Shown here piece by piece: positions 32,378-64,000 of a stretch of DNA of 64,000 nt (position 1 is its first letter; each line of letters starts with the position of its first letter). The DNA comes from Lepidodermella squamata. Taxonomy: Eukaryota > Animalia > Gastrotricha. Made by a program: the position numbers and the translations under genes. The DNA is taken from the NCBI GenBank assembly GCA_047495785.1, contig JBLDXI010000024.1, positions 434,001 through 498,000 of the forward strand, in the 5' to 3' direction. The notes below the pieces were generated by a model. It was not told the origin of the DNA. It was given only the letters and a program-made list of their open reading frames with translations, and ran no database searches.

Positions 32378-34310
32378 ATGAAAACTCTTATTATAGTGTC
32401 TGCGATTTTCGCTGCTGCGTTAGCCTCAGTTCCGTGTGGCTCAAGCGGCAATTGCTGCAAGAGTGGCGAATCATGTTGCAATCTGGGCAATGGAACTTTC
32501 GGCTGCTTCCCTGAGACCGAGGTTGTAATTTCTCTTATTTTAGCTACAATATTTGAAATTTCTTGTTTTTAGGCTGTTTGTTGTGATGGATCGGCCTTCG
32601 CTTGCAAGAAAGATTTCGTTTGTCACATAAAATTTGGTATGTGCATCAACTCTGATATGGTAATCCCTCCAATGACTCCTAGCCACGCTGCGTCATCATG
32701 CACCGATCTCTCCACCCATTTCCATCACGTACAAGCACGATGTGGGCCCAATGGTCTCTGCAATGACAACTTCACTTGTTGCCCAAATGCCAAGCCAAGT
32801 AAATCATTTTGAGCCAAGTTATTCGTATGAATTCATTAGCTTTCAGGCCCAGCGTGTTGTCCGCTGCCGAACGCCGTTTGCTGTCAAGATTTGATTCATT
32901 GCTGCCCAGGCGGGTATACCTGCGATACGGGCAAGCAAGGGTAAGTTCAAACACGGGCGCGGGAATTTTAAGGCTACCACGAATTTAACATACATATTCT
33001 AGATGCGTTCCTTCCAAAGAAATCAGCTCGAAGAGAATCATTAAGCCTTCAGAGTCACCAGTAAATGCAGTAGCGCCTCTTCCCAAAGCAGTTTTCTGCC
33101 CAGACCATAGTGTATGCTTCGACAATCAGACGTGCTGCGCTCTGAAAGATGGCCGATTTGGCTGCTGCCCAATTAGAGACGGCGTCTGTTGCGCTGATGG
33201 TCTTCACTGTTGTCCTAAACATACCACGTGTGATCCTGATCATCAACAGTGTATTCAAGACGGACCCGATTTCCTTGATTTTGTGCAAACTAAACCGACG
33301 AAGTCAATCCAAAATGTTCACGAACTGTCGTCCAAGACGGCTTTTACCAAAGAAATCGTTTGTCCGAACCCAGCCTACAAATGCCCTGACGGTACTACTT
33401 GCTGCCAGGTCAATGGAGGATATGGATGCTGCCCTTTTGCTAACGTGAGTGTAGTGATTTTATTATACGGTCAATAATATGTACTTTTTATTAGGCTGTT
33501 TGCTGTGCTGATGGAAGCAACTGCTGCCCGAGTAACTACACTTGCGACAATCAACACCAGCGATGTGTTCAATCGCCGTGGTTGATGAACTCAAATGTTT
33601 TCGTTCAACCACTGCATAAAACTGGTTCGCGTACCATCAGAAACGACAAAGTCGTTAGAGAGCAAAGTTTTGCTAATGGTCGATTGGTTACCGAAGTTTT
33701 GTGCCCTGATAACTCGTCGGTTTGCGACGACGGAACCACTTGCTGCCAAATGGCCGATGGTACCTACGGCTGCTGTCCCTACGTTAACGCCACCTGCTGT
33801 GCAGATCACCAACACTGTTGCCCTGCAGGTTACACCTGTGATTTGGTTCATCAACAATGCACCCAAAGTGGATTCAATAGGCACATGCCGATGAGCATTG
33901 TTTTCATTGAAACTGTCATCCAAGATGACACTGCTCCCCTTCAACAAGTGACAGGCGAAGAAGCTGACCAGGAAGTCGGCACGCAGATGTTCGGGGAGAT
34001 TTTATCCTTTTTGGACAAAATCATCACCAGTGGTCTGATGGAGAAACCTTTCATTCCGGATTCAAAGCCGGTCGAGTCACAGACTACATGCTCTGTCATC
34101 GATGCATTAATGATTGGCTGTCCTTCGGGCACGTCATGCTGCCGTCCAGTTGGAGAAAACGAAAAGGCAATCTGCTGTCCGGGTAGCGGATCAGTCTCGT
34201 GTTGCGCTGGTGGGTTTTGCTGCCCTGAAAATCACGAGTGCAACGCCTTGACGTCAACGTGTCAGCGCTCTGTCTCAAATGATCGTCAACAAGAAGATTT
34301 GATCGCATAA
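32378..34310 (+). CDS. GRN: Progranulin-like precursor, several granulin modules
   Basis: Signal peptide [17 protein letters not shown]; repeated C-x-CC-x-CC-x-CC-x-DxxHCCP-x-C modules, e.g. [46 protein letters not shown]. Confidence 0.92.
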
Positions 34311-36463: not shown

Positions 36464-39449
36464 ATGCTGCAGAAACGGCGTCTACTGGCGGCGCCTAGAG
36501 TTGCAGCGCTTATTAGTCTTTTCTTAATATTCGGATCGGGTAAGCTAGTTATTTAGGTATTAAACGGAATGACGGATGCGGTGTTTTCTTAGCGGCTGCA
36601 ATTGACGACAGCATGCTTTCGCAATTACTCGCGAGCGTGGGCCTTGCCGGCGACGATAGCAATCAAGACATTGCTTCTCAGGCTGACACCTTGTTGTCAG
36701 CTGATTCTGGAGCAAATCCGCTTCCAGTGGCCGGCTCTGGAGTCACCCACAAGCCTAACCCTACATTCATGCTTCTTGGTGGCGATGCCGTAGCTGGTGA
36801 GGTCGTCGACGGCGGCAACGCTTTTGTTGGATCCTTCGGCAGTTTGCTTGCCGAAGAAACCGACAATGCGACCGATTCGCTGATCGATCGCGGTCGTGGT
36901 CGTCGCGTAATTTATCATGATTTTGATGTTATTTAGGTAATTATATCGCGATTTTCCGCTAGCAATGGGGCATTACCGGCGCCAGTGGACCCCGCAGAGA
37001 CACACGGCCGTCTACGTGCCAAACTACCTGCTCTTGCTTGCAAGAGGCTGGCCCCACTGGACCTCCTGGACCTCAAGGATCTCCTGGTCCACGTGGTCCT
37101 CAAGGATCAGAAGGCCCAATGGGACCACCGGGCAATTCCGGATTGAAGGGCGAAATTGGTCGCCCTGGTGTACCTGGTCGCGATGGCGGCAGCGGAATCA
37201 AGGGCGAACCTGGTCAACCTGGCACAGCTGGCCAGCCTGGTCAGAAGGGTGAAGTTGGTCCACAGGGCAAGGTCGGTCCGTCAGGGCCATCTGGCCAATC
37301 AGGCCAACCTGGGCAGAAGGGAGAGCGTGGTGTCGACGGCAGAGATGGATGCAACGGTGCCGATGGACGCAACGGTGTAACAGGTTATCCCGGTCGTCAA
37401 GGCCCTCAAGGTCCTGACGGTCCTACCGGTCGCAAGGGTGAGCCAGGTACTGCCGACCCTCTGCCAGGCGCTAAGGGTGAGCGCGGCCCCTACGGCGAGA
37501 AGGGCAGCACAGGACGAGACTGTCGCGACGGCTATCCTGGTGCCCGTGGTGAGAAGGGCGATCGCGGTAGCGATGGCGATGCTGGATTCCGCGGCTTACC
37601 TGGTCCAGCTGGTCCTAAAGGATACCCCGGACCCTACAGATCTGGTGTTAAAGGACAGAAGGGCGAAAAAGGCGATATCGGAGAGAGAGGCGAGGTTAGA
37701 ATAACATTGCCTGTCACAAACAACTCGATAGCTTATTTTAACCTATTAGTTTGGCCCTCAAGGTGCTCCAGGTGCTAAGGGCGAAAAAGGCTTGCGAGGT
37801 AAACTTGGAAAATCAAATAATATTCTTCCTATGTGCAAAACCATATATTCTTCATTATCCAGGCCGTGAGGGTGGTCAAGGCCAAGACATTGTCGTCTTT
37901 GGACTACCGGGAACTCGAGGTGCTCCCGGTCCTCAAGGTGATCGCGGTGAACCTGGTCCTCGTGGCCAAACTGGCGAGCGTGGACCTGGCGGTAGCCTCG
38001 GGCCGAGAGGTTTGCAGAGGGAAACGCTTTAAGAACCGGATTTTTGTACAAGTATAATTTTTAGGCGAGCCTGGTGACATTGGACCCGACGGTCCTCAAG
38101 GTTTCCCTGGCGACTGCCAATCCTCCACCAACCTTATTAACGGTGACAAGGGTGACCGTGGCTTCCGTGGTGCACCTGGCGTTGACGGCATGCCCGGACC
38201 TCGCGGCTCCCCCGGATTCAAGGGCGAACCCGGTCGTCCTGGTCCGGAAGGTCCCGCAGGCAGTCGTGGTGAGTCTGGCAGAGACGGTTTCGATGGCCCG
38301 AAAGGTCAGCCTGGCCCTGATGGTGATGGCCGTCCTGGACCAGCTGGTCCTTCTGGTGACAGAGGTGAACGCGGTCGTCGTGGCCCTTCTGGATTCCCAG
38401 GTAACTCCAGCACTTGAAATGTAACGCTCAATTTTATTTATGATGTCGGCAACAGGTCCTCAGGGCGAGAAGGGTGATAACATGTTCGGCCCGCCCGGAC
38501 CGAAAGGTCGTCGTGGTCCATCAGGTCCTCCGGGACCTCGCGGTCAGCCAGGTCCCGTTGGGCAACAAGGCGATCGTGGCCTTCCTGGCCTAGATGGTGA
38601 CATTGGTATTGTCGGTGATCGAGGTGACACTGGTGATGCGTGCAGTGGTCTGTTGACAAGCTACGTCTACACCATCCATTCGCAGTCGACTGAAGTCCCA
38701 GTCTGCCCCCAAAGCGACCACGTTCAACTCTGGGCCGGTTACAGTTTGCTGCACACCGAAGACGAAGGCCGTGCATTCGTCCAAGATCTCGGCCGACCAG
38801 GCTCATGCGTCCGCCAGTTCGATGCTATGCCTTTTATCTTCTGCGGCGCCAACGAAGTTTGCACATGGGGCGCCCGCACAGCTACGTCATATTGGCTCGC
38901 TAGTGACACCCGTCGTGACTACATTAGCCTTTACGGCCTTGATGACTCGCGTGAGAGACCTCTTCGTTCCGACGAAGAGAAATTGCGCCAGATTTCGCGA
39001 TGCGCAGTTTGCCTGTCATACGGTCCTCTCATGGCCGTTCACTCGCAAAACTCCTCTGTCCCAGATTGCCCATCGCCGCAGTGGCAATCCCTGTGGATGG
39101 GCTACAGCTTCGCCATGGTAAGAAGTGAAAATACCTAGAAAATACCGAATAACTAAATGATCTTGCTTTAAAAACCTAGCACACAGTCGGCGTGATGGGT
39201 GGTGGCCAGTTCTTGGAGTCGCCCGGCAGTTGCTTGTCTGATTTCCGTCACCATCCCTATGTTGAGTGCACAGCAAGAGGAGAGTGCGCTTACTACTCGG
39301 AGAAAATGTCCTACTGGCTCGTCGCGAGTGACAAGATGACCCGGTCGTTCTCGAATGCCGTCATTAGGAAACGCGAAGAAGCTGTTAGCAGTATTTCTCG
39401 ATGCCGCGTATGCACTCTTCGTACATCAAACAGGCCTCAACGCGCGTAA
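36464..39449 (+). CDS. Short type IV-like collagen chain A (861 aa, 8 coding exons)
   Basis: Exons 36464-36539, 36593-36906, 36963-37694, 37750-37798, 37863-38009, 38065-38400, 38456-39117, 39180-39449 give one open frame: signal peptide, acidic propeptide, CxxxCxC, Gly-X-Y aa160-613, NC1 with two C4 repeats and 12 Cys. Confidence 0.92.
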
Positions 39450-40074
39450 TCATCTGTTAACGATATCTATTCGACTTACTCTTTATAGACTGTTGATAAA
39501 ATACTGAAAACTGTCGCTTTTACTTTGAAAAATGTGTCACACACCCGCTTTTATATCTAAATGTCTCTATTTGCGGTCATTCAAGGGGCTACAATACCAT
39601 TCTTGGCTTAGTGAGGCACAGCTGATTGAATATATTTTCATATTATGATACTTCGCGAGTTCCCGGTATTAACCTCCCCTAGCCGTCGAGGTTCTTCTCC
39701 ACGAGTACGCTATATTTTCTTGCGCAAAAACTCGCTTGGAACAGAATGATTTACTATCGAAATTGTTTCGTCTACCTTGTCACGAAATGTCTGCAATTTC
39801 AACAACTCATACGAAAATTATATAGACTGCCATTGCTAAATTTTATGTTTTTTACGTATTTTTATCGCTGTGCCCGTTAACTAATATTTGAAAATACCGG
39901 GGAATATCCGAGTTATCTGAGGAATGATGCGTTTGGGCGAAATCTTCCAACATATCGCCGTGAATTTCTACATCGAATCGCCATGTTTGATTTTTTGAGA
40001 CAAGAAAAAATACTGTTTAAGCGCGATGCTAAAGTTCTTTCCATATTTTAGGTCAGCTTGATCACATTGTTAAC

Positions 40075-43089
<3,015 letters not shown>

Positions 43090-44749
43090 ACTATAGCCTC
43101 GTCACAGTATAATCATTATCAAATTATTAACAACAAAAACTTCCATAGGAGAACAAATCCATATCACTCTCTTTTTGAATGATGAATGGCTTTTTAAGGA
43201 CGCTTTTGATAAAGTTCAGCAATTTGCCAATAACTACCCCCGAGTCCCGGTACTGCCATTGCTTCTGATGTTTTGGTGAAGTATTTTCAATAGCTTATGT
43301 CATCTGCCTAAAAGCGGGCATACCTCTGACCCGCCGACTCAGACTCTTTTCTCGCAAGTTTTAACACTCATGCGTTGTTTAACGGCTGACCGTGGTTCGT
43401 CATTGGTTTTTCTGCTATTTTTATGTCGTCTAACAAATTACCTTGATATTATGTGAACGAACAAAAAGCGGACTTATTTTCTACCAGCTATATAAAGTGA
43501 CAAAATATTTTTCTTGTGTATGTGTCTTTGTTCACATTTTCAACTGCCAACATATGGATAGTCGTGTGTGCCTGAAGTTATGGGCTATCGAATTCGGAAG
43601 GTAATTTGCGGTTTTTCATGTTTTATTTTTCCTTCTAAATAAAAAACGAAAATAAAAGGAATGGAAGGCGATAATGAAAGAAGGAAAATATGCGACAAGC
43701 ATTATCATCTTTACAACGATGGGAAATAAAATCCGAATAGACAGCTATCTTGATCGCGGTATTACAATTTATTCAACGTGTACCTTTCAAGTCAGCTTAA
43801 AGTCATTTCGCTCGCTAAACCTAAAATACCTCGCAAGATTATAGCGTAAAAATGAACGCATAGAATTCATCTATGGGTTCAAAATAAAGCTAATCATCCC
43901 CCGAAAGAACTGGATTCCTCAATGAAAAGAACGGGTTTAGTTTCAGCAATAACTGGAGTTCTAGATGGTTGAAGGGCGTTGTTTTCATGGGCTTGATGGC
44001 ATCAAAAGATGCAAAGCCATTACACATTATTCTGTGGAACGAAATGCAAAAGTCTGAAAAATTAAATTGCCGCCTCTCTGTTTGGCCTTTTGACGCAATG
44101 AATTAAGAGACTATGAAAACCACAAACTCAGCAGCAGCGGAGATGGGCCTCCCTCTGAAATGGTAAAAGAGCGGTCTTGTTTTTATTTTTGATTCATCGT
44201 CGCTTCGCGAGTATTTTTCAATGCCGCGCGCAAAATTAGGCGCACATGTCATTGTCGCCGGCGTTGTTGACGATTGAGCGCGAGAGGCGAGCGCAAAAAC
44301 GGTGCAGCAGCCGCGCGCGCTGTCGAAACAACACATAACGCGAAAATATGAACCAGCAAGCGCGCATGTGTGGCGCACCCAGCCTTGTCGTATATCGCCG
44401 TATTTTTGCGCTACACGAAAACGTCAGGCGGCGCTCTTTACCGCACTGCGCGCTATAGTTATGCTTTTTGTTTCATGCTTTGTTAGAAAGTGCGCTCGCC
44501 GAACTTTCATCGGCTCAACAAACAATCATCAGACGCTATTAGTGTAAAAGCGTGCGCGACGCTTGAATAAGCTGTGGATTTTATAGTGACTTCGTACCCT
44601 AATTAAACTTGCCTTTAGTATCCCTAAACTTCCTCCCCAGTTTCTATTGTTTGGTTTTTTTTGTTTCCGGTGCTCGATTATCGCGCCTTAATTACACTTA
44701 ATTTTGACATTTTTTCTTCAGAACCTTCAAGATCTGTCCAAACTACGAA

Positions 44750-47700
44750 ATGCGGGGAAGACTGAAGGGCAAAATTGTGATAATATTCTTCACTCTGATG
44801 ATAATTGCTCAAACAGGTTAGCATTTATTTTTCAGCAAGAATTTAAAATTTATTCATTCCATAATAGCATCAGCTTCCGGCGATGAACAAAGCTTCTTAG
44901 CCCAACTATTGGCGAGCGTGGGCCTTCGCAGTGAAGGAATAGTACATACAGCGAATGATACTTCTGCCGAAGATGTAGTTGAAGCGAACGAGCGGATGCA
45001 TCATAGCGTCGGGCGGAAAGATGCGGTGGATTCTGCCTCGCGCGAATCATCCCACGAAGCAGATAGCCAGCAAAAAGTTACAGCTAAGCCAAAAGATCCA
45101 ACTTACATGATGTTGGGCAACGAGCAAGAGAGCGACGATTTCTCCGATGGCGATTATTCTCATAACGTTAAGCTGGAAGCTCCGATAGGACCTCAACGAA
45201 TTGCTAATTTATCCAATGCCGAGCGGCTACGACGTCATCACGTAATCTATTTTTTCTAGGCATTATCAGGCAGATTCGGAAATTTTCTTCTTGATTAGGA
45301 ATATATTTACGACGATGATAATCATTTTAAGCAATATAATGAAGACGAAATGGTAATATTTTCCCGTTGTTTGTTCATTGAACCTCACTTGAAATTTCTT
45401 ATCGGCTTTGCAGCCCTTGGAGTTCCGTGACTCGAATACAGGTCCAACAGGTCCCCGAACTACTCGTCGACCTAACGCACAGCCGCCGAGTTCTGAACCA
45501 GGATCTTGTTCCAGCCCGACAGCATGTTCCTGCTATACAATGCCCGGTCCATCAGGGCCAATCGGACAGCCCGGTCTGCCAGGAGTTCGAGGTGCGCAAG
45601 GCCCCCAGGGTGATCAGGGCCCCCCTGGACCTCCTGGTCTAAAAGGAGACCCCGGAAGGGTACGTCTGCGGTTTCCAACTTGATTTAGTTAGTAATTTTC
45701 GCGTATTTTATTACCAGGCTGGAAATCCGGGTACCGATGGAACAAGAGGACCCAAAGGCGATCCAGGAAGCCCAGGATTTACAGGACCCGGAGGAGACAA
45801 GGGCGATATCGGTCGCCCCGGCTTGAGTGGTCCGCCTGGCCCTCAAGGCAATCCTGGATTACCCGGGGTGAAAGGCGAAAGGGGTATTTTGATCTCAATT
45901 CGCAACATGGAGATGTATCGTATTGCCATGGTTTTTCAGGAACGGATGGACGACCAGGATGTGACGGCAAAGATGGAACTCCTGGAAAGCCGGGGACCAT
46001 GGGATTGCCAGGTGTGAAAGGAAATCAAGGCCCACGTGGCCCAAAGGTATAATTTAATTTTACATAGTAGCACATCATATACCGTTTTCTTTGCCAGGGT
46101 GAGTCTGGAGAAGCCGTTGGAACCCCTGGTGCGAAAGGTGCAAAGGGGGAGCCAGGGACTTGCGGACAAGTCGGTCGATCTGGTATTGATGGCATGGTAA
46201 CTACTGTTTTCACTTTACTTTACAGCTGGTTCTAAATGTTAATTAACAGCCTGGACCAAGAGGGCCAAAAGGAGACAAAGGAGAATTGGGTGAAAATGGT
46301 GAGAAAGGCAATCCTGGACCTCGCGGGCAGAAGGGAGAGAGCGGCAGCGCCAGGCCCGGTGTTAAAGGAGAACCAGGTCCAAGAGGCGACAAGGGTGATA
46401 GTGGACCGGTAACAACATATACTTGACTGCTATTGTTTTGATTCATATCCATCACTTCATGTCGCTCCCGAATTTTAGCCTGGTCCGCCTGGCGAACCTG
46501 GAATGAAGGGTGACAAAGGGGTGCCAGGTTAGTAAAAACTTTAACCGCATACAAGCTATCAGGCAAGATAATATTTTTCCTTTAATTCAGGTGCTCCCGG
46601 CGCAAACGGAAGAAGTCTTTCGACGGTCGGGCTTCCGGGACCTCGTGGTGTACCAGGAGAACCTGGCGATAAAGGCAACGTTGGGCCAAGAGGTTGAAAC
46701 TTTTAACTTACATGTCATCCCATAGTCACACAAATTCTGTTGTATGAAATTCAGGTCCTAAAGGCGAACCTGGCGTCGAAGGGTTACAAGGCAGTCGAGG
46801 TCTGATTAAAACCTTTTTGCACATTTCGTATTCATCTCATGCTTATCCTAGGTCTCCCTGGAGATCCTGGCCCTGAGGGACCAGCCGGCGAGCCCGGAGT
46901 TTGTGTTCAGTCCCCTTCAGAAACAAGAAGTGAAAAAGGTGACAAAGGAGACAAAGGTAGTCAAGGTCCTCCTGGAAATCCCGGTTCACGAGGCGAACCC
47001 GGTAAAGCTCTATCAACTCTTGTTAAAATTAGTGTCTATATGTGTGTTTTGTTCGCAGGTTCGCGCGGACCTCCCGGCAACACGGGCATGGATGGAAACC
47101 CTGGACCTAAGGGAGACCCAGGTTTGACTGATAATAGCATAATCATGACACACATAGCTTTGATCGTCTAAATAGGTCGACCGGGTGCGCCAGGTCCGAA
47201 AGGTGCGGCTGGTCGCGATGCTGATGGAGGCTCAGGGCCTAAGGGACCTCCTGGCGATCGAGGCGACAAAGGGGAAATGGGTGTTAGAGGAGTCAAAGGT
47301 GATCGCGGTCCCAAAGGGGATTCAATGATGGGTGCCCCTGGTGAAAAAGGTAATCGAGGTGCGCAGGGCCCGCCTGGTCTGCCTGGTAGCCAAGGCCCAC
47401 CTGGCCCCAAAGGTGACACCGGGGAAGACGGTTTACCTGGTCGGCAAGGTCCACAAGGCGATAAAGGTGAGAGAGGTGAAAGCTTCGGAGGCCTACTTAC
47501 CAGCTACGTCTACGCCCGGCATTCTCAGACAACTGACGCCCCTGCTTGCGCTGCGGAGGATCACATTCTACTCTGGCGAGGATTTAGTTTGCTTCATACA
47601 GAAGACGAAGGCCGCGCTTTCGTCCAAGACCTTGGCCATGCAGGATCTTGCCTCGCTCACTTCGAAGCTATGCCATTCATTTTCTGCGGAGCCAATGAGG

Positions 47701-48289
47701 TTTGCACATGGGGCGCTAGAACAGCAACTTCTTACTGGTTGGCGAGTGATACGCGGCAGGAATACATCAATCTTTACGGCCTTGATGACTCACGTGAACG
47801 TCCATTGACTACAGATGAGGAAATCCTGAAGCAGATCTCTCGCTGCTCTGTTTGCTTGTCGTTTGGACCCCTGCTAGCTATCCACTCGCAAAACTCAACA
47901 GTACCAGCTTGCCCATCTCCTAAATGGCAATCTCTGTGGACTGGATACAGTTTTGCAATGGTTAGAACTAATTTTCTAATTTTTTAACACGTTTTTTATT
48001 GTTATTCTTGCAGCATGCTGTAGGTCCTATGGGCGGTGGCCAACCTTTGGAATCACCTGGAAGCTGTTTACCGGACTTCCGCCATCACCCTTACATTGAA
48101 TGCACCGCATCTGGCCAATGCGCTTATTACTCGGAGAAAATGACGTATTGGCTGGTTGCATTCGACAAAATGCGGAGAACTGGCGCTGGAGCAGCCGCGA
48201 CCATTAGGAAGCGCCAAGACGCCATCGGTGCGATTGCCAGGTGTAGAGTTTGCACTTTGCGCACCTCATCAGGACCTTCTTCAGATTAA
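44750..48289 (+). CDS. Short type IV-like collagen chain C (913 aa, 15 coding exons)
   Basis: Exons 44750-44816, 44868-45241, 45299-45352, 45414-45659, 45718-45883, 45940-46046, 46098-46196, 46250-46408, 46479-46527, 46591-46692, 46755-46799, 46852-47001, 47059-47121, 47176-47960, 48014-48289; Gly-X-Y aa210-663; 12-Cys NC1. Confidence 0.9.
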
Positions 48290-50156: not shown

Positions 50157-51287
50157 CTAATTTTTCTCGGCTACTCGGAGCTTGGCAGATCGAGCTCGCG
50201 GGTTCGACTCAATCTCGGCATGAGATGGCACAATTACGTTGTTGTGATGATGGCCGTTGACTATTTCTCGATTAGGTACCGGCTTCCATTTACGCGAAAG
50301 CAGCGATGCCATTTGAGAAGCAGTGAGAGGTTCAGTGCTAGTACGCAAACGCGAATGCAAATACGAATTATCGACGCCAGCCGGAGTTTGAATGTTAACC
50401 GCGTGAAACACGCGCTTAACTATGCGGTCTTCCAATGAATGGAACGATATGACCATACATCGACCTTTAGGTTTCAGCAAATCGTGAGCTAGGTCGATGC
50501 CGTAACACAAATCGTTCAACTCATCATTAACGAATATTCGCAAGGCTTGGAAAGTCCTAGTAGCAGGATGAGCAAATCGACCTAATTTGTCGCGGTTGAA
50601 AACCTCGCCGCGAAAGGAAACTGCCGATATCAAGGCCGCTAACTGCGTGGTTCTCGTTATAGGCCCTCGAGAATTTCGAAAATCAACTATAGCCCGAGCA
50701 ATTTCGTCAGCATTTTTCTCCTCGCCGTAAACTTTGATTATTTTCGTTAGATCGCAAACCGACAGTTGGTTAACGACATCAGCGGCACTTGGCGTGTCCT
50801 TCTCGTGAGGCCCGCCCATTCGCATGTCAAGGGGACCGTCGTGCGAGATGGAAAATCCACGCTCAAAATCGTCAAACTGAGGGCTCGAGACTCCCAGATC
50901 AAACAACACTGCATCGACTATTACATCTGGTTCGATTTTTTTACGAAGGTCCCGAAAGCGGCCGAGATGGGCGGAAATTCTGTTCTCCTGCAGGCTTTTG
51001 CAGCGTTCGATCGCTTCAGGGTCGCGATCCAGACAAATGACCCGAGAATTGGGCCAGTAGTCTAATATCGCTTTCGTGTGGCCTCCACAGCCATATGTCA
51101 TGTCAATAACTGTCGGATTTGAGGAGGATTTCATCACTGGTTCCATACTTTTGAGCACTTCTTCCAGTAATACAGGCATATGTCGCGGCGGGGTCGGCGT
51201 ACTTTCCTGAGTCAATTGATGCTTACTTCGCCGAAAAATCGCTAGAAGAAGACTTTTTGGGCTGTGAAGAAGTTGCTTTGTGAGCAT
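50157..51287 (-). CDS. METTL15: Mitochondrial 12S rRNA N4-methylcytidine methyltransferase (RsmH/MraW family), intronless
   Basis: HMPVLLEEV, IDMTYGCGGHT, LDRDP, DLGVSSPQFD..RGFS..DGPLDMRM, HPATRTFQALRIFVNDEL, ISFHSLEDRIVK, NPRARSAKLR. Confidence 0.96.
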   Translation of the reverse strand: MLTKQLLHSPKSLLLAIFRRSKHQLTQESTPTPPRHMPVLLEEVLKSMEPVMKSSSNPTVIDMTYGCGGHTKAILDYWPNSRVICLDRDPEAIERCKSLQENRISAHLGRFRDLRKKIEPDVIVDAVLFDLGVSSPQFDDFERGFSISHDGPLDMRMGGPHEKDTPSAADVVNQLSVCDLTKIIKVYGEEKNADEIARAIVDFRNSRGPITRTTQLAALISAVSFRGEVFNRDKLGRFAHPATRTFQALRIFVNDELNDLCYGIDLAHDLLKPKGRCMVISFHSLEDRIVKRVFHAVNIQTPAGVDNSYLHSRLRTSTEPLTASQMASLLSRKWKPVPNREIVNGHHHNNVIVPSHAEIESNPRARSAKLRVAEKN

Positions 51288-52522: not shown

Positions 52523-54556
52523 CTAATACAATCGCTTCTCGTATGAGTGTAGGCTGTGAACACCACCCTCGACCTGGGCTTGAGTCGTTCGCTTCTCAAA
52601 CTTCAGTTCACCTGAATACATCATGGCTCGTAGGGCGCTCAAGGAACGAGCACCAATATCCTGGCAACCATGACGAATTCCAGCCAGCAAATAGGGGACG
52701 AAACGGTGTACTGATCCCTTGTCCTCGATTGCTCCGGAAACTCCCTGAGCGACTTTAACGGCAGAAGCTTCGCTGTAGTATCGCTTCTGTGCAGATTTGC
52801 CCTTGTCCATGGCATCCAGCGATCCCATTCCACGATAGCGCTTGAGACGGACGCCATTTTCGAAGAAGTATTCACCGGGTGCTTCTGTTGTACCAGCAAG
52901 CATAGAACCCATCATGACCGTGGAAGCTCCCAAAGATAAAGCTTTGATCAAATGCCCTACATATCGTACACCGCCGTCCGCAATTACCGGAACGCCAAAG
53001 CGACGAGCGTACTCTGATACCCGATAAACGGCAGTGGCTTGAGGACGACCTACAGCTAAAACCTCCTGAGTAATGCAAATACTACCCGAACCCATGCCGA
53101 CTCTAAGGCCATCAGCACCGGCATCCAACAAATTTTTCGCTTGGGCAGCGGTAACAACTGTTAGAAATGTATTAGTTTAGGCAGTTAATTGTAAATTGAG
53201 CACCTACCATTGCCTGCAATAACCTGAATGTCGGGGCGATTGGATTTAATGTGATGAATCATGTCGATTTGATAGATTGAGTTGCCCTGAGATGAATCTA
53301 GCACCACAACATCAACTCCTGCGTTCGCTAATAGTTCCAAGCGATTGTAGTCATCGATGTGAGTAGACATGGCGGCACCGCACAACAGCTGGTCCTTTGA
53401 ATCCTTAGATGCCTGAGGGAAATCCCGGCTCTTCTTCAAATCCGTTCGGGACATGATGGCGACAAGTTCGTCGTCTTCGTTAACGATCGGAAGTTTTCCT
53501 TTGACATGAATAGAAGCTTCACATGGTTCTTAAGTTCTTAAGCATTTGCTTATCGTACCTTTCTTGCTCTCGCGAAGAATACGGCTAGCTGCTTCGAGGC
53601 TGGTTCCTGCCGGAGCAGTCACCAAGTCATCCCGACGTGTCATGAGCTTAAGTGGAAGCGGATTATGTTTATTTCTTCATTTTTGTACTAGATTCGATGT
53701 TAAATGTTACCTCCGAAATTTTCAAGTCATAAGCGTCCTTGGAGATAAAATCGATATCGCGCTGTGTGATGAGACCAACTAGTTTCCCGCCAAGCTTCCC
53801 ATTGTCTGTTACAGGAAAACCACTGAACCCATACAGTCTTTTGGCATCTATCATATCCTGAACAGTTTTATCAGCCGACATGACAACGGGATCAGTGATG
53901 AAGCCTTGTTTGTATTTCTTGACTTTCCACACTTCTTCAGCCTGCCACTCCGGCGTTCCATTGTGGTGAATGATACCAACGCCACCCCAAAGCTGTAGGG
54001 CAACCAACATATAGTGTCATTTCAGATATTTTGTAAATAATTGTGCATTACCGCCAGAGCTATAGCCATTTTAGCCTCAGTCACCGTGTCCATAGGCGAT
54101 GATGCTATCGGCGTTTTCAGGGTAATTTTGCGGGTGAGTGCTGAGGTCAAGTCAACATCGTCTGGAGGAAAGTCAATGTATCCAGGCAGGATAATGAAGT
54201 CGCTGAAAACTCAATCGTAAAAGTAGAAATGCAACACGAATTGGGCTTACTTATAAGTTAGTCCCTCGCCCTGCGATAGGAGCTGAGCAGCAGAGAGACC
54301 ATCATCGGGTACATAGGCAGCACCTCCCGTGATCAGAAAATCAGTACTGAAAAGACAAGAGTAAGATTAAAGCACCGGTTGGAGATGCTGGGAAGCTTGT
54401 TGAGTTTTAACAAAGGGACACAGAATTATCATATAAGCTGAACCAGCCGCTATTTTCAACTAAAATTTTAAACGAAGAGTACCTTTTCTTCTTCGCGAAC
54501 GGATCTGAATGGTTATTGTTGTAGTTGTTAACAACGTTATTCGAATTAGTCAACAT
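52523..54556 (-). CDS. IMPDH: Inosine-5'-monophosphate dehydrogenase, multi-exon
   Basis: [46 protein letters not shown] pair, LDSSQGNS, catalytic [34 protein letters not shown]-stop. Confidence 0.97.
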
Positions 54557-57535: not shown

Positions 57536-60185
57536 TCAAATAACGCGCTGATTGGACATTTCTATCTCCGTGGCGACAACGAGCTCGTTACTATCCTCAT
57601 TTGCTTTGACGGAGGGCTTGAAATTTCTTTCTTCCCGCATCTCTTTTTCTCTGATTTTCCACCACACGTATGCATTCACCTGTCAAAATATAACGATGAC
57701 GATGAAATAGAATGTATATGTTTCAAGTCATACCGGTAAGGAAATGAATAGAAAACTGCTTGAAAGGCAATGATACCAGATTCCTGAACAAAATTTGAAT
57801 GCATTTTAAAGGGAAATCTGAGAGATGCAATACCTAATGATCGAGTCTCGTAGAGAACGCAATTGCGAGCTGTTTTTTCTTCCACAAGGTTAGCTTGAAT
57901 CGACAGTAGGACATCTTCCGGCTTCAAAATGCTTGTGTCACAGCGGGATGTAGAACTTCCAGAAACTGCTAGAGTTTGTGCACCTTGTTCATCCCAGAGT
58001 AAGCAGTGAGCGTCAAAAACCGAACCGAAAATGACAGGTCCGGGTATAAAGCCTGTATGGTATATTAAAGCGATGAAGCTAATATTTATCAAATAGAAGG
58101 AAGTTTTTTTACTGAATAGGCTGCAGAACGATGAGGTAAGCCCGATCGCCCATAACTTGTAGCGAGGTCCAACAGTTCTATAGCGGGCCCGTAAAATATA
58201 CATATCACATATAGATCAGCGAACTTCAAAGCAAACCTCATCATAATGATTGTCATTGGCGTTGATGGCATTAAAATTAAAATAGCCAGAACAAACGCGA
58301 GCGCATTGTAGGCGAAAAAACTTCGACAAAACCTATGCCAGAATGATTCAGGTTGGCATTTCTCGGGAACCGCACTGCCAGCAGCATTAGTTCCATTGAT
58401 TTTCACGCAAGTGCACTCACTGTAAGTTTTCTAGACATTATTTTAAAATTGGTAGAAATATTGCCGTTTGAAGTGTTCCGTTCTCTTACATTGTTTGCAT
58501 GGAATGACCGGCAACCAGCGTGGCAAGCCGATGCGTAAGTTCTGCCATCACTGCCACAAATGGGGTCGTATTTATTCGGGCAATAGCTGCACTTTTGCTG
58601 ACATTCAGGCGAGGCCGACTGTTGATAGTGCAATGAATGCTTAAGATCTAGGCCAATGATTTGCTCGGGTTCACACTGCAGACCACTCATGAATAGCAAC
58701 CCAATTGCAACAATGGTTGCAATGACAAGAGTACCCAACACAGCGTTTGATTGCGAAATTTTCAACTTAGACATGAGCAGGCCACCGAGAAACGTTCCAA
58801 GGGCACAAGGAATAGGATTCGCAATGCCGGAAAATAGGTTAGCTAGCCACACTGGTTGTCTAAATTGAGCTTCCATGTATTTTGGGTAGAACGTGAAGTA
58901 TCCAGCGGTTATATACACTTGAGCACACGCAAGGAAAACAAGTGCCAGGAAAGTTGTATTTCGAAACAAAATCAAGAAGTTTCGGGGGAGAGTTTGCAGC
59001 GTAAAAGGTTCAGAATCCACGTCATCAGCATCAGTAGTAACGTTCACAGAATCGGCAAAAGGAGAAAGCTCTTTCGAAATTAAAGCTTTTGACGCTTCAG
59101 AAGATTCCCTTGAAATGTCGCTCTTCGCGATGGTTTTACTACTGGAAACACCTTCATCACACGTTTTGTGGTCATCTTTGCTGCGCGTGGGGGATAAACT
59201 CTTTGGGAACAAGAGGAACAGCGGTGAAACAATGAGGAACATTGCCGAGGATAGCAAAAAGCCGCTCCACCAGGCCCCAACGAAGTGACTTGAATTGGGG
59301 TCAGGGGGATTTGGTTCGAATGGATGAACGTAAATTGAACCAGCTACGCCCGATGAGAAGAAGAAGGCAGCAGCCGGTCCAAGCATCATCATGCTATACG
59401 TCGTTCCAATGAATGTGGCACTTCGATCTTTCTCCACATTATTGTCGATGTAAAGTACTCCGATCACGGCGTATGTTGACGATGCGGTTGCAACGATACC
59501 TTGGGCAAGAGTGAGAATGACCATAACCCAAATAGCTTCGCTGGACCCAACAAGTTTCCCTGTCTGCTGCTTGAGTTCTTCTTCCAGTTCGGCAAGTGTG
59601 CAGTTTCGAAGAGGCACTGTCGAATGTGACGAGTCAGTAAGACAAGCAATGCTGGTAACACTTGAATTGGTTTGCTCCATTTTCGGAAAGCGGCTAAGAT
59701 TGTCTGATGCAGCAGGAATTAGGACATGAGGCGAAGCTAGCAAAAAAGCTCCGATCGCCATAAAAAATCCGCGCATTGCCAGGCGACGCGGTATGTGACA
59801 ATTAGTCTCAGTAAAGCTGAATATAATAATTGTCAAATGCCCAATCTCGAAACTCGCCAAGAAAATCCCAGTGTAGAGGCTAATGTGCCAAGTAATATAT
59901 TTTAAAAGTTGGGCATCTTTTGAAAATGTCATTTTACCTGGGCATGCCATACCGCCTTTCAAGCGTAGTAAGAGCAGCTATTGTGTAGGCTAGATAAAAG
60001 CTGTACCAAAACTGAACGACGCACAGTAGAGCAGTGTAGGTGTAGATGTTAATGAACCGACGAGGCAAGAATCCTAATAAGAGATCTTTTTGATGGGCGG
60101 AGGTCCCATCGTGAATTGGATTTGACGATTCGACCATTCCACGCAAATCCGGTTCCTCGACCTTTTTCTTAGCATTGGAGTCCAT
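57536..60185 (-). CDS. Organic anion transporting polypeptide (SLCO/OATP) A, multi-exon
   Basis: ALTTLERRYG, SFEIG, LYIDNNV, FVGAWWSGF, FYPKYMEAQF, Kazal-like YDPICGSDGRTYASACHAGC, FIPGPVIFGSVFDAHCLLW; last exon VNAYVWWK..stop at 57536. Confidence 0.92.
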
Positions 60186-62212: not shown

Positions 62213-64000
62213 TCATTTCTTAGTTTTCTCTTTAGAAAGCAATTCGCCGGCATTAAAAACTTCCTGCTCGTCATCATCGGCGTTTTCCTGCTTTCGAAGC
62301 TCGGCCTCTCTTTCATTTTTTCGGCACTTCCACCACACATAGCCATTCACCGGTAAGGAAAGAAACAAGAACAGACTTGTGATAGCATGAAACCAGAAAG
62401 ACAGACTGTTCGGCTCAAAAACAGAACAATGCCTGACGGGGTCAGATACTTCGTTCGCCGATGACTTCGAAGGAGGTGTAGTCGTTGTGCAACCTGCAGC
62501 TTGAGGCGTCTCAGTCGAGGATTCTTCCCAATATAAACAAACCGAGTCGAAAACTGCACCGTAAATTACCGGTGCTGGTATGAAGCCTGTCAAAGGTAAA
62601 ATTTTACGAATTGCTTATCGAATCATGTCGAAAAACAAGTTTTACCCAAGAAACTGCAGAAGGAGGATGTGAGACCCACAGCCCAAGACTTGTACTTCTC
62701 TCCGACTACTCTGCAGATGTTGAGGAAAGATGAATGATGACGCATAAAAGGAAATAATTTTGTGAAACAAACCTCATCATAATTATTGTTAGAGGAGTTG
62801 TAGGTAAAAAAATGATGACAGCAAAAATGAATGCCAAAATGTTATAGATGTAGAAAGTTAGGCATCTCGGTGAACTGCCATTTTCTTCGCCACATCTACC
62901 GATAACCGCATAGGATTCAGACCAAGTTTCATTGTTCGGCGACAGAGCATTTGAACAGGCACATCCAGAGAAATGAGTACCATTCCCGAAACGACAGCCG
63001 GCGTGGCACGGCGACACGTAGTGATCGGTATTATTTACACAAATCGGTTGATAAAAGGATGGGCAGCTGTTACAGCCACAAGAATTCGTTGCATTCGAAT
63101 TTGAGAGGCCGATCAAATCGCCGCTTTCGCATCTCATAGGTGACATGGCCATTAAAGCAATGCCGACAATAAGAACGAAGATAAATGTGTAACCCAATGA
63201 TGCAGATTGACTGAGTTTCATTTTCGACATCAGGTACCCGCCGATGAAAGTGCCCAATGCGCACGGTATGGGGTTGGCGATCGCCGAAATAAAATTTGCA
63301 GCTTTTGTACTCTGCAGGAACACCGTCTCAAGGTATTTCGGATAAAAGGTGAAGTAGCCAGCTAAAAAGTAGGTTTGCATGCAAGAGATGAATACTAGCG
63401 CCAGAAACAATTTGTTTCGGAAAAGTATTACAAAATTCCGAGGTATCGCCTTGAGCGAAAATTTCTCCTCTCCCACGGGGTTAACTTCGTTTTCTGCCTT
63501 GCTTTTACGATGGTGTAAGTGATGCTGATGCTGGTGACTTTTTCTTCTCGGGGTAAGTTGCATCGGAAAGAAGAAGAAAAATGGAGCAACAATGGCGAAC
63601 ATGATCGCACAAAGCACAAATCCAATCCACCAAGCTCCCACAAAAGCAGAAGAATTCTCACTAGGCGGATTAGGCTCTAGAGGACGGACGTAAACCGTGG
63701 AAGTAACGCCAGAGGAGAAGAAAAACGCCGCCGCTGGCCCCAGCATCATCATACTACGCAAAAAATTAAAGCCCCAATCTCGATTTGTTAAAGAATTCAC
63801 AAACCTGTAGACAAAGCCAATTAGCGTTGAAGATCTAGATTTATCCACGTTGTTGTCAATGTATAAAATCCCAATGACGTGGTAGGTTGAAGAGGCGGTT
63901 GAAACGACTATTTGAGCAATTACCAGTAAAATCAGAGCAGTAAGAGCGACAGAATTTTCGTCCGCATCTTCATCGGTCGTGGATATCGATGAAGTGTTAA
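62213..64000 (-). CDS. SLCO/OATP B, 3' part (5' end beyond window), tandem paralogue of A
   Basis: LYIDNNV, MMMLGPAAAFFFSSGV, FVGAWWIGF, AGYFTFYPKY, YQPIC..YVSPCHAGC, FIPAPVIYGAVFDSVCLYW; shares long blocks with gene A. Confidence 0.92.

Follow-up and report, generated by a model that had tools for sequence, protein, structure and literature searches.

Within a 64,000-nucleotide window of the genome of the gastrotrich Lepidodermella squamata (contig JBLDXI010000024.1, positions 434,001 to 498,000; coordinates below count from the first letter of this window), three tandem genes, which we call A, B and C, encode short collagen-IV-type chains whose collagenous helices are equal in length to the residue. 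Collagen IV counts among the founding components of animal tissues, and an arm of ~400 nm and a paired gene arrangement are considered almost universal for it. In the transcribed family described here, the NC1 and a 7S-like start of collagen IV sit on a rod of one-third the length, and that length has stayed constant to the residue over a long divergence. We think it probable that the three genes stem from old tandem duplications of a lineage-specific ‘mini collagen IV’ and that their products form a network with short arms, whose composition and assembly we infer.

The gene models were built independently, junction by junction, with an open frame and Gly-X-Y continuity demanded across GT-AG introns of 51-70 nt. 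A window-wide scan for Gly-X-Y runs confined such coding to about 37.0-47.5 kb on the plus strand and found no further Gly-X-Y gene in the 64 kb besides A, B and C, which all lie head-to-tail on that strand, spaced by 625 and 1660 nt. Gene A (36464-39449; 861 amino acids) has eight exons (36464-36539, 36593-36906, 36963-37694, 37750-37798, 37863-38009, 38065-38400, 38456-39117 and 39180-39449), as does gene B (40075-43089; 878 amino acids; 40075-40147, 40204-40481, 40535-41222, 41277-41317, 41372-41780, 41836-42054, 42106-42680 and 42736-43089). Gene C (44750-48289; 913 amino acids) has 15 exons (44750-44816, 44868-45241, 45299-45352, 45414-45659, 45718-45883, 45940-46046, 46098-46196, 46250-46408, 46479-46527, 46591-46692, 46755-46799, 46852-47001, 47059-47121, 47176-47960 and 48014-48289). 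The models come from the splice search and translation, and those of B and C are also supported by RNA contigs. Intron number is thus seven in A, seven in B and 14 in C, and codon usage is near-identical in A and B, with GGG at 2% in both versus 9% in C. In the alignment, three of the four introns in the helix of A match the column and phase of RNA-confirmed introns of B or C. When the 500 nt upstream of the three genes were compared for common words, three 7-mers were found and otherwise no common motif.

The N-terminal region of C contains a mini-exon of 54 nt (45299-45352; 18 amino acids), flanked by GT-AG introns of 57 and 61 nt. Tyr, Asp and Glu abound among its residues, as is typical of tyrosine-sulfation sites, and neither A nor B has a counterpart.

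All three chains end in a collagen IV NC1 domain: 38647-39446 in A, with a phase-0 intron inside it at 39118-39179; 42201-43086 in B, including the C-terminal tail; and 47490-48286 in C. Each has 12 Cys at matching positions and the HSQ motif at NC1 residues 11 and 132, and the two C4 halves of the domain are present. Pfam and PDB searches were run with the NC1 of C, which matched C4 (PF01413) at 9.2e-39 and 1.8e-18 on its two exons and the human alpha1(IV) NC1 chain (1m3d_A/1li1_A) at an E value of about 4e-41 over the first 159 residues. It aligns end to end with the solved human, bovine and fly collagen IV NC1 domains (alpha1-alpha5 chains). The only Pfam domains found were Collagen and C4; there was no C1q-type C-terminal domain. 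As for the sulfilimine pair, Met93 is conserved (..AMPFIFC..), and for its partner Lys211 the conserved string I-R-K-R puts a Lys in the expected column or in the next one, according to where the gap is set. Judged against the criteria of Fidler et al. 2017 (PMC5395295), A, B and C are true chains of the collagen IV type, of one-third length, and since they possess both HSQ motifs and the full set of 12 collagen IV Cys, they are not spongins. The first-pass annotation of this DNA had likewise described a true collagen IV NC1 on one-third-length, head-to-tail chains.

Two departures within this domain are worth recording. After the last NC1 cysteines, the tail of B (42990-43086) is about 30 amino acids longer than those of A and C. 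In A, B and C, and in their metagenome relatives, the loop that connects the third Cys pair to the C-x-x-C of the first C4 half (for example, at 47730-47790) has about ten more residues (..Y-G-L-D-D-S-R-E..) than in human and fly.

The opposite end of each chain may correspond to the 7S end of collagen IV, of which a Cys knot just before the helix is a feature. The order in every chain is signal peptide, a non-collagenous region of 100-180 amino acids, then a C-x3/5-C-x-C knot that directly adjoins the start of the helix (37017-37037 in A, where it reads C-x3-C-x-C, 40586-40606 in B and 45507-45533 in C). The non-collagenous sequence encoded by exon 2 (36593-36906, 40204-40481 and 44868-45241) shares the motifs ..LLASVGL.. 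and ..PTF/Y.. among the chains and gave no Pfam match; R-x-R-R (dibasic) sites are found in it in A and C and none in B. A 7S-like start had been proposed on the strength of CxC and GCNG. Judged by motifs, all three chains have the knot, G-X-K at triplets 11, 17 and 30, an unbroken run of 45 triplets and, at triplet 34, G-C-N/D-G, which together may represent such a start.

The collagenous regions begin at the first Gly after CxC (residue 160 in A, 146 in B and 210 in C) and run for 456 amino acids to the NC1 start, GLLT(S/A)Y, in all three; that is, 454 residues plus two junction residues. Including introns, they occupy 37050-38646 in A (residues 160-615), 40619-42200 in B (146-601) and 45546-47489 in C (210-665). 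Our independent rebuild recovers the exact 454-residue helix reported before (A 160-613, B 146-599 and C 210-663); in that numbering the helix of C starts at residue 210 because the 18-codon mini-exon is included. The three helices align end to end with zero gaps in MAFFT, and 454 residues at 0.29 nm each give a rod of ~130 nm. The triplets named above fall identically in each chain within the opening 135 residues, with G-C-N at 37347-37355 in A and G-C-D at 40916-40924 in B and 45957-45965 in C.

Seven interruption sites lie in the ~320 residues that follow the unbroken stretch, and five of them are exactly co-located across the chains. Both the first (DPLP, R-GVP and V-GTP) and the Cys-containing interruption (residues 296-308) are in register, in agreement with the earlier description. 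One interruption is missing in C, which reads as perfect Gly-X-Y where A lacks one Gly and B lacks two, and a two-residue insertion is displaced in C by one triplet towards the start of the helix, compared with A and B. No non-collagenous block within any of the helices is longer than 11 residues. The helix Cys of A and B occupy the same four positions (101, 158, 298 and 455); those of C are at 101, 151 and 298.

This constancy of length accompanies deep divergence of sequence. Outside the shared Gly, helix identity is only 27-30% between chains, bearing out the divergence of X and Y residues that had been noted, and at four-fold sites the third-base identity among A, B and C equals the saturated expectation. 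With synonymous sites saturated, recent duplication does not explain why the helices are equal in length. The N-terminal regions (159, 145 and 209 amino acids in A, B and C) and the C-terminal tails have accumulated many indels, whereas the helix has none, so the lock on length is real. Equal helix length is therefore a long-maintained constraint, and neither chance nor recent duplication. Relatives from metagenomes have helices of 376 amino acids, about 200 amino acids and shorter, which indicates that length can evolve within the family and is fixed within the trio.

Transcription was followed with three public runs placed on 41201-47200, a stretch outside which gene A lies; X2 consists of unspliced DNA, and X1 and X3 yield spliced RNA contigs. 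X1 contigs confirm all five introns of B in the stretch (41223-41276, 41318-41371, 41781-41835, 42055-42105 and 42681-42735), two of which are also confirmed by X3, and, among the joints listed, five introns of C (45660-45717, 46528-46590, 46800-46851, 47002-47058 and 47122-47175). To this extent, the exons spliced by hand in the first-pass annotation are borne out by RNA. In both RNA runs depth is zero at every position sampled inside introns, as in X1 at 46205-46245 within the C intron 46197-46249, and one X1 contig piece ends at 45305, inside the mini-exon. Joints in X1 that appeared to connect opposite strands are low-depth assembly artefacts and were not used as splice evidence. Contigs of B run on to about 43650 in the 3′ untranslated region and nothing is transcribed at 43.8-44.6 kb, which makes B and C separate messages.

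B and C are both transcribed in X1, at very different levels. By contig depth, which is a crude measure of expression, B stands at 150-790 and C at 3-16 in X1, and B at 4-25 and C at 0 in X3; on this crude measure, B is expressed much more than C in these samples. The transcripts also reveal variation in B: an 81-nt stretch (42784-42864) occurs in X1 in two forms that differ at 42813, 42819 and 42834 and have similar depths (217 versus 279), the alternative being the form present in the DNA run X2. We considered whether the variant contig was a transcript of A and rejected this, as no more than 61-63 of its 81 positions agree with A and C, and X2 contains these three differences too; the two forms are probably B and a second allele or strain of it, both expressed. 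At 41872-41899, contigs from X1 and X2 match B and then turn into other collagen-like sequence, which points to another expressed collagen paralogue elsewhere in the genome with an identical run of ~28 nt.

The closest relatives of the trio come from metagenomes. A HMMER search with the NC1 of C against 1.84 billion cluster representatives returned 686 proteins at E values up to 0.001, the best of which is a 143-amino-acid fragment with 69% identity; this and the next-best matches lie on eukaryotic metagenome contigs with several short collagen-IV-like genes. These relatives have CxC before the helix, some are arranged in head-to-tail tandem, and one (L001) has G-C-N-G. In the NC1 tree, A, B and C, which are 72-79% identical in this domain, form a clade (98/94) with one metagenome gene as sister, and all seven sequences, the trio and the metagenome genes, form a clade (99/95) apart from those of vertebrates, amphioxus, arthropods and molluscs. 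The trio therefore arose by duplication inside a lineage-specific family. An alpha1/alpha2-like partnership, for which an NC1 phylogeny had been proposed as a check, does not emerge; the three are in-paralogues, and the pairing of A with B is weak (93/61).

No orthologue with the 454-residue architecture was found in the HMMER search of the 1.84 billion cluster representatives, in a word-index search (four matches only) or in a search seeded with a short chain from Physella, which returned mostly pieces of canonical chains. The novelty claimed for the trio should nevertheless be toned down, since its components have precedents. Short ‘collagen alpha(IV) chain-like’ predictions exist in Physella acuta (XP_059154881.1, 556 amino acids), Branchiostoma (398-822 amino acids) and insects (364-440 amino acids), and ctenophores have 4-20 collagen IV genes, some of them in unidirectional tandem arrays (Fidler et al. 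2017, PMC5395295).

By analogy with collagen IV, we suggest that NC1 selects and trimerises the chains, which would then zip into ~130-nm rods. NC1 hexamers would link the rods tail-to-tail, and the Cys- and Lys-rich N-terminal helix would link them head-to-head, in the manner of 7S. The interruptions, which are held in register, may serve as flexible points. The resulting network would have an arm about one-third of the usual length. We propose that rod length is fixed by the geometry of this assembly, so that no indel in the helix is tolerated.

Several observations weigh against this reading. The sulfilimine Lys is one residue off in the HMMER alignment. The long N-terminal region, absent from canonical collagen IV, could block joining of the 7S type unless it is removed; A and C have a dibasic site, and B has none. 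Contig depth, moreover, is a poor gauge of expression.

As to composition, what fits best is that B, probably together with A, is the main chain and that C is minor or tissue-restricted; an obligate 1:1:1 combination of A, B and C fits less well. The Cys, codon usage and intron number shared by A and B, combined with the difference in depth, make these two resemble a pair and C the odd one out, which weighs against a strict 1:1:1 ratio. Equal length and register are necessary for co-assembly and not sufficient for it. They do not prove an A-B-C trimer, because helix length and the positions of interruptions are likewise preserved among collagen paralogues whose trimers are homomeric or variable, as in collagen VIII (PMC12864517).

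Separate homotrimers, acting as isoforms of particular tissues or stages and sharing one rod length because each must fit the same lattice or partner, as in collagens VIII and X, are the strongest of the alternatives, although we doubt them. The unequal RNA depth is in keeping with them, and collagen VIII has been reported as both hetero- and homotrimer (PMC12864517). We scored charge pairs over axial and lateral Y-to-X contacts for all 27 chain orders: CCC came out best, the A-B-C orders were mid-table and AAA was low, a result that does not discriminate between assemblies and that agrees with homotrimers in so far as their scores equal or exceed those of heterotrimers. However, three identical chains would place three Cys at one level and leave one unpaired, at each of four places, and nothing excludes mixing.

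Somewhat less probable again is a mixed trimer of A and B in the style of alpha1/alpha2 (2:1 or 1:2), for which C would be an alternative third chain. The coincident helix Cys, the matching codon usage and the seven introns of each gene all speak for such a pairing, but the NC1 tree joins A to B only weakly.

The first-pass annotation had gone further and deduced from length and register an A-B-C protomer, its register kept since three different chains pair along the whole length. As stated, this is not supported, and we judge an obligate A-B-C heterotrimer unlikely. Equal length, co-located interruptions and tandem linkage are all in keeping with it, and the Cys at helix positions 158 and 455, present in A and B and absent from C, would give one clean A-B disulfide pair at each level. 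Cys parity as a wider argument for this trimer is not clean, as the helix Cys total is odd (11). B lies far above C in X1, and C is absent from X3; charge pairs put CCC first and the A-B-C registers mid-table; the NC1 domains are in-paralogues of 72-79% identity; C lacks one interruption and has another shifted by a triplet; and no common motif lies upstream. We find it hard to credit, to a similar degree, a grander arrangement in which all three chains (or A and B, with C serving as a variant) form a dedicated heterotrimeric 130-nm protomer and the three-gene unit is copied elsewhere in the genome, giving several fine-mesh networks like basement membranes; if true, such modular mini collagen IV networks would be a matrix design not described in any animal.

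It is highly improbable that the helices look equal in length only because splice sites were picked to preserve the frame and Gly-X-Y: in-frame alternatives exist at a few junctions (A intron 4 and B intron 3), but RNA confirms the chosen sites of every B intron in the stretch, including intron 3, and of five C introns, and A intron 4 has the column and phase of the confirmed C intron 46528-46590.

Among known systems, A, B and C can be set beside the canonical collagen IV chains of bilaterians, cnidarians, placozoans and homoscleromorph sponges, with which they share the NC1 of two C4 halves, its 12 Cys, both HSQ motifs and the sulfilimine Met, as well as an interrupted Gly-X-Y repeat and, apparently, a Cys-rich N-terminal end of the helix. 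The helix, however, has 454-456 residues instead of about 1400 (PMC5395295), the genes lie head-to-tail and not as a head-to-head pair, and the chains have an extra N-terminal region of 100-180 amino acids and about 10 additional residues in one NC1 loop. Ctenophore collagen IV offers a parallel in genome organization, with many genes per genome, head-to-tail tandem arrays and compact genes (PMC5395295). Ctenophore group II chains have an NC2 domain in the helix and an extra NC1 cysteine loop, and in the multiple alignment of that study only the second HSQ is reported as conserved (PMC5395295); the trio, by contrast, lacks NC2, has exactly 12 NC1 Cys and retains both HSQ motifs. Spongin short-chain collagens (Aouacheria et al. 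2006; Exposito et al. 1991) are likewise invertebrate proteins with a short collagenous domain and an NC1-related C-terminal domain. They have no HSQ, lack four collagen IV Cys and have three Cys of their own, and Pfam C4 is missed in them by HMMER (PMC5395295, PMC12749355), whereas the trio has both HSQ motifs, all 12 collagen IV Cys and Pfam C4. Among short chains, the predictions listed above and the metagenome tandem mini genes (L001, L003, L007 and L009) resemble the trio in having a true C4-type NC1 on a short helix, and the metagenome genes also in the CxC before the helix, the tandem layout and membership of the same NC1 clade (99/95). They differ in helix length and interruption pattern, the Physella protein has a Sushi domain, and none has a 454-residue helix or the layout of the trio.

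Collagens VIII and X have helices of about 454-460 residues with conserved imperfections. The likeness of the trio to them, in the ~130-nm rod, conserved interruptions, globular ends, lattice building and equal-length paralogues, would be one of design; their C-terminal domain is C1q-like, whereas that of the trio is C4, and the ends are not homologous. Collagen VIII forms both hetero- and homotrimers (PMC12864517).

The trio thus offers a natural test of which features of the collagen IV network depend on arm length, and a compact, mostly intron-poor model for the selection of chains by NC1. Together with the metagenome tandem mini genes, it hints at a lineage with a diversification of collagen IV as strong as that in ctenophores.

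Elsewhere in the window, Pfam matches identify an NDUFS1-like gene (90-1154), a FERM-PDZ-tyrosine-phosphatase gene on the minus strand (about 8-19 kb) and a granulin (33582-34310). Downstream of the trio, all on the minus strand, are a METTL15-like gene (50157-51287), an IMPDH/GMP-reductase-like gene (52523-53131) and two OATP transporter genes (58403-59962 and 62706-63848), one of them with a Kazal domain. The METTL15-like protein matches sequences of a mollusc, an insect and a hemichordate at no more than 46-47%.

The NC1 search also brought up unusual proteins. One metagenome protein of 770 amino acids (P0004) has two complete NC1 domains in tandem, with four C4 halves, and the metagenome loci L007 and L009 are head-to-tail pairs of very short collagen-IV-like genes. 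Three further matches (P0114, P0124 and P0139) have no Gly-X-Y at all and have hydrophobic N-termini that resemble prokaryotic prepilin-type leaders; a C4-like domain may therefore occur outside animals.

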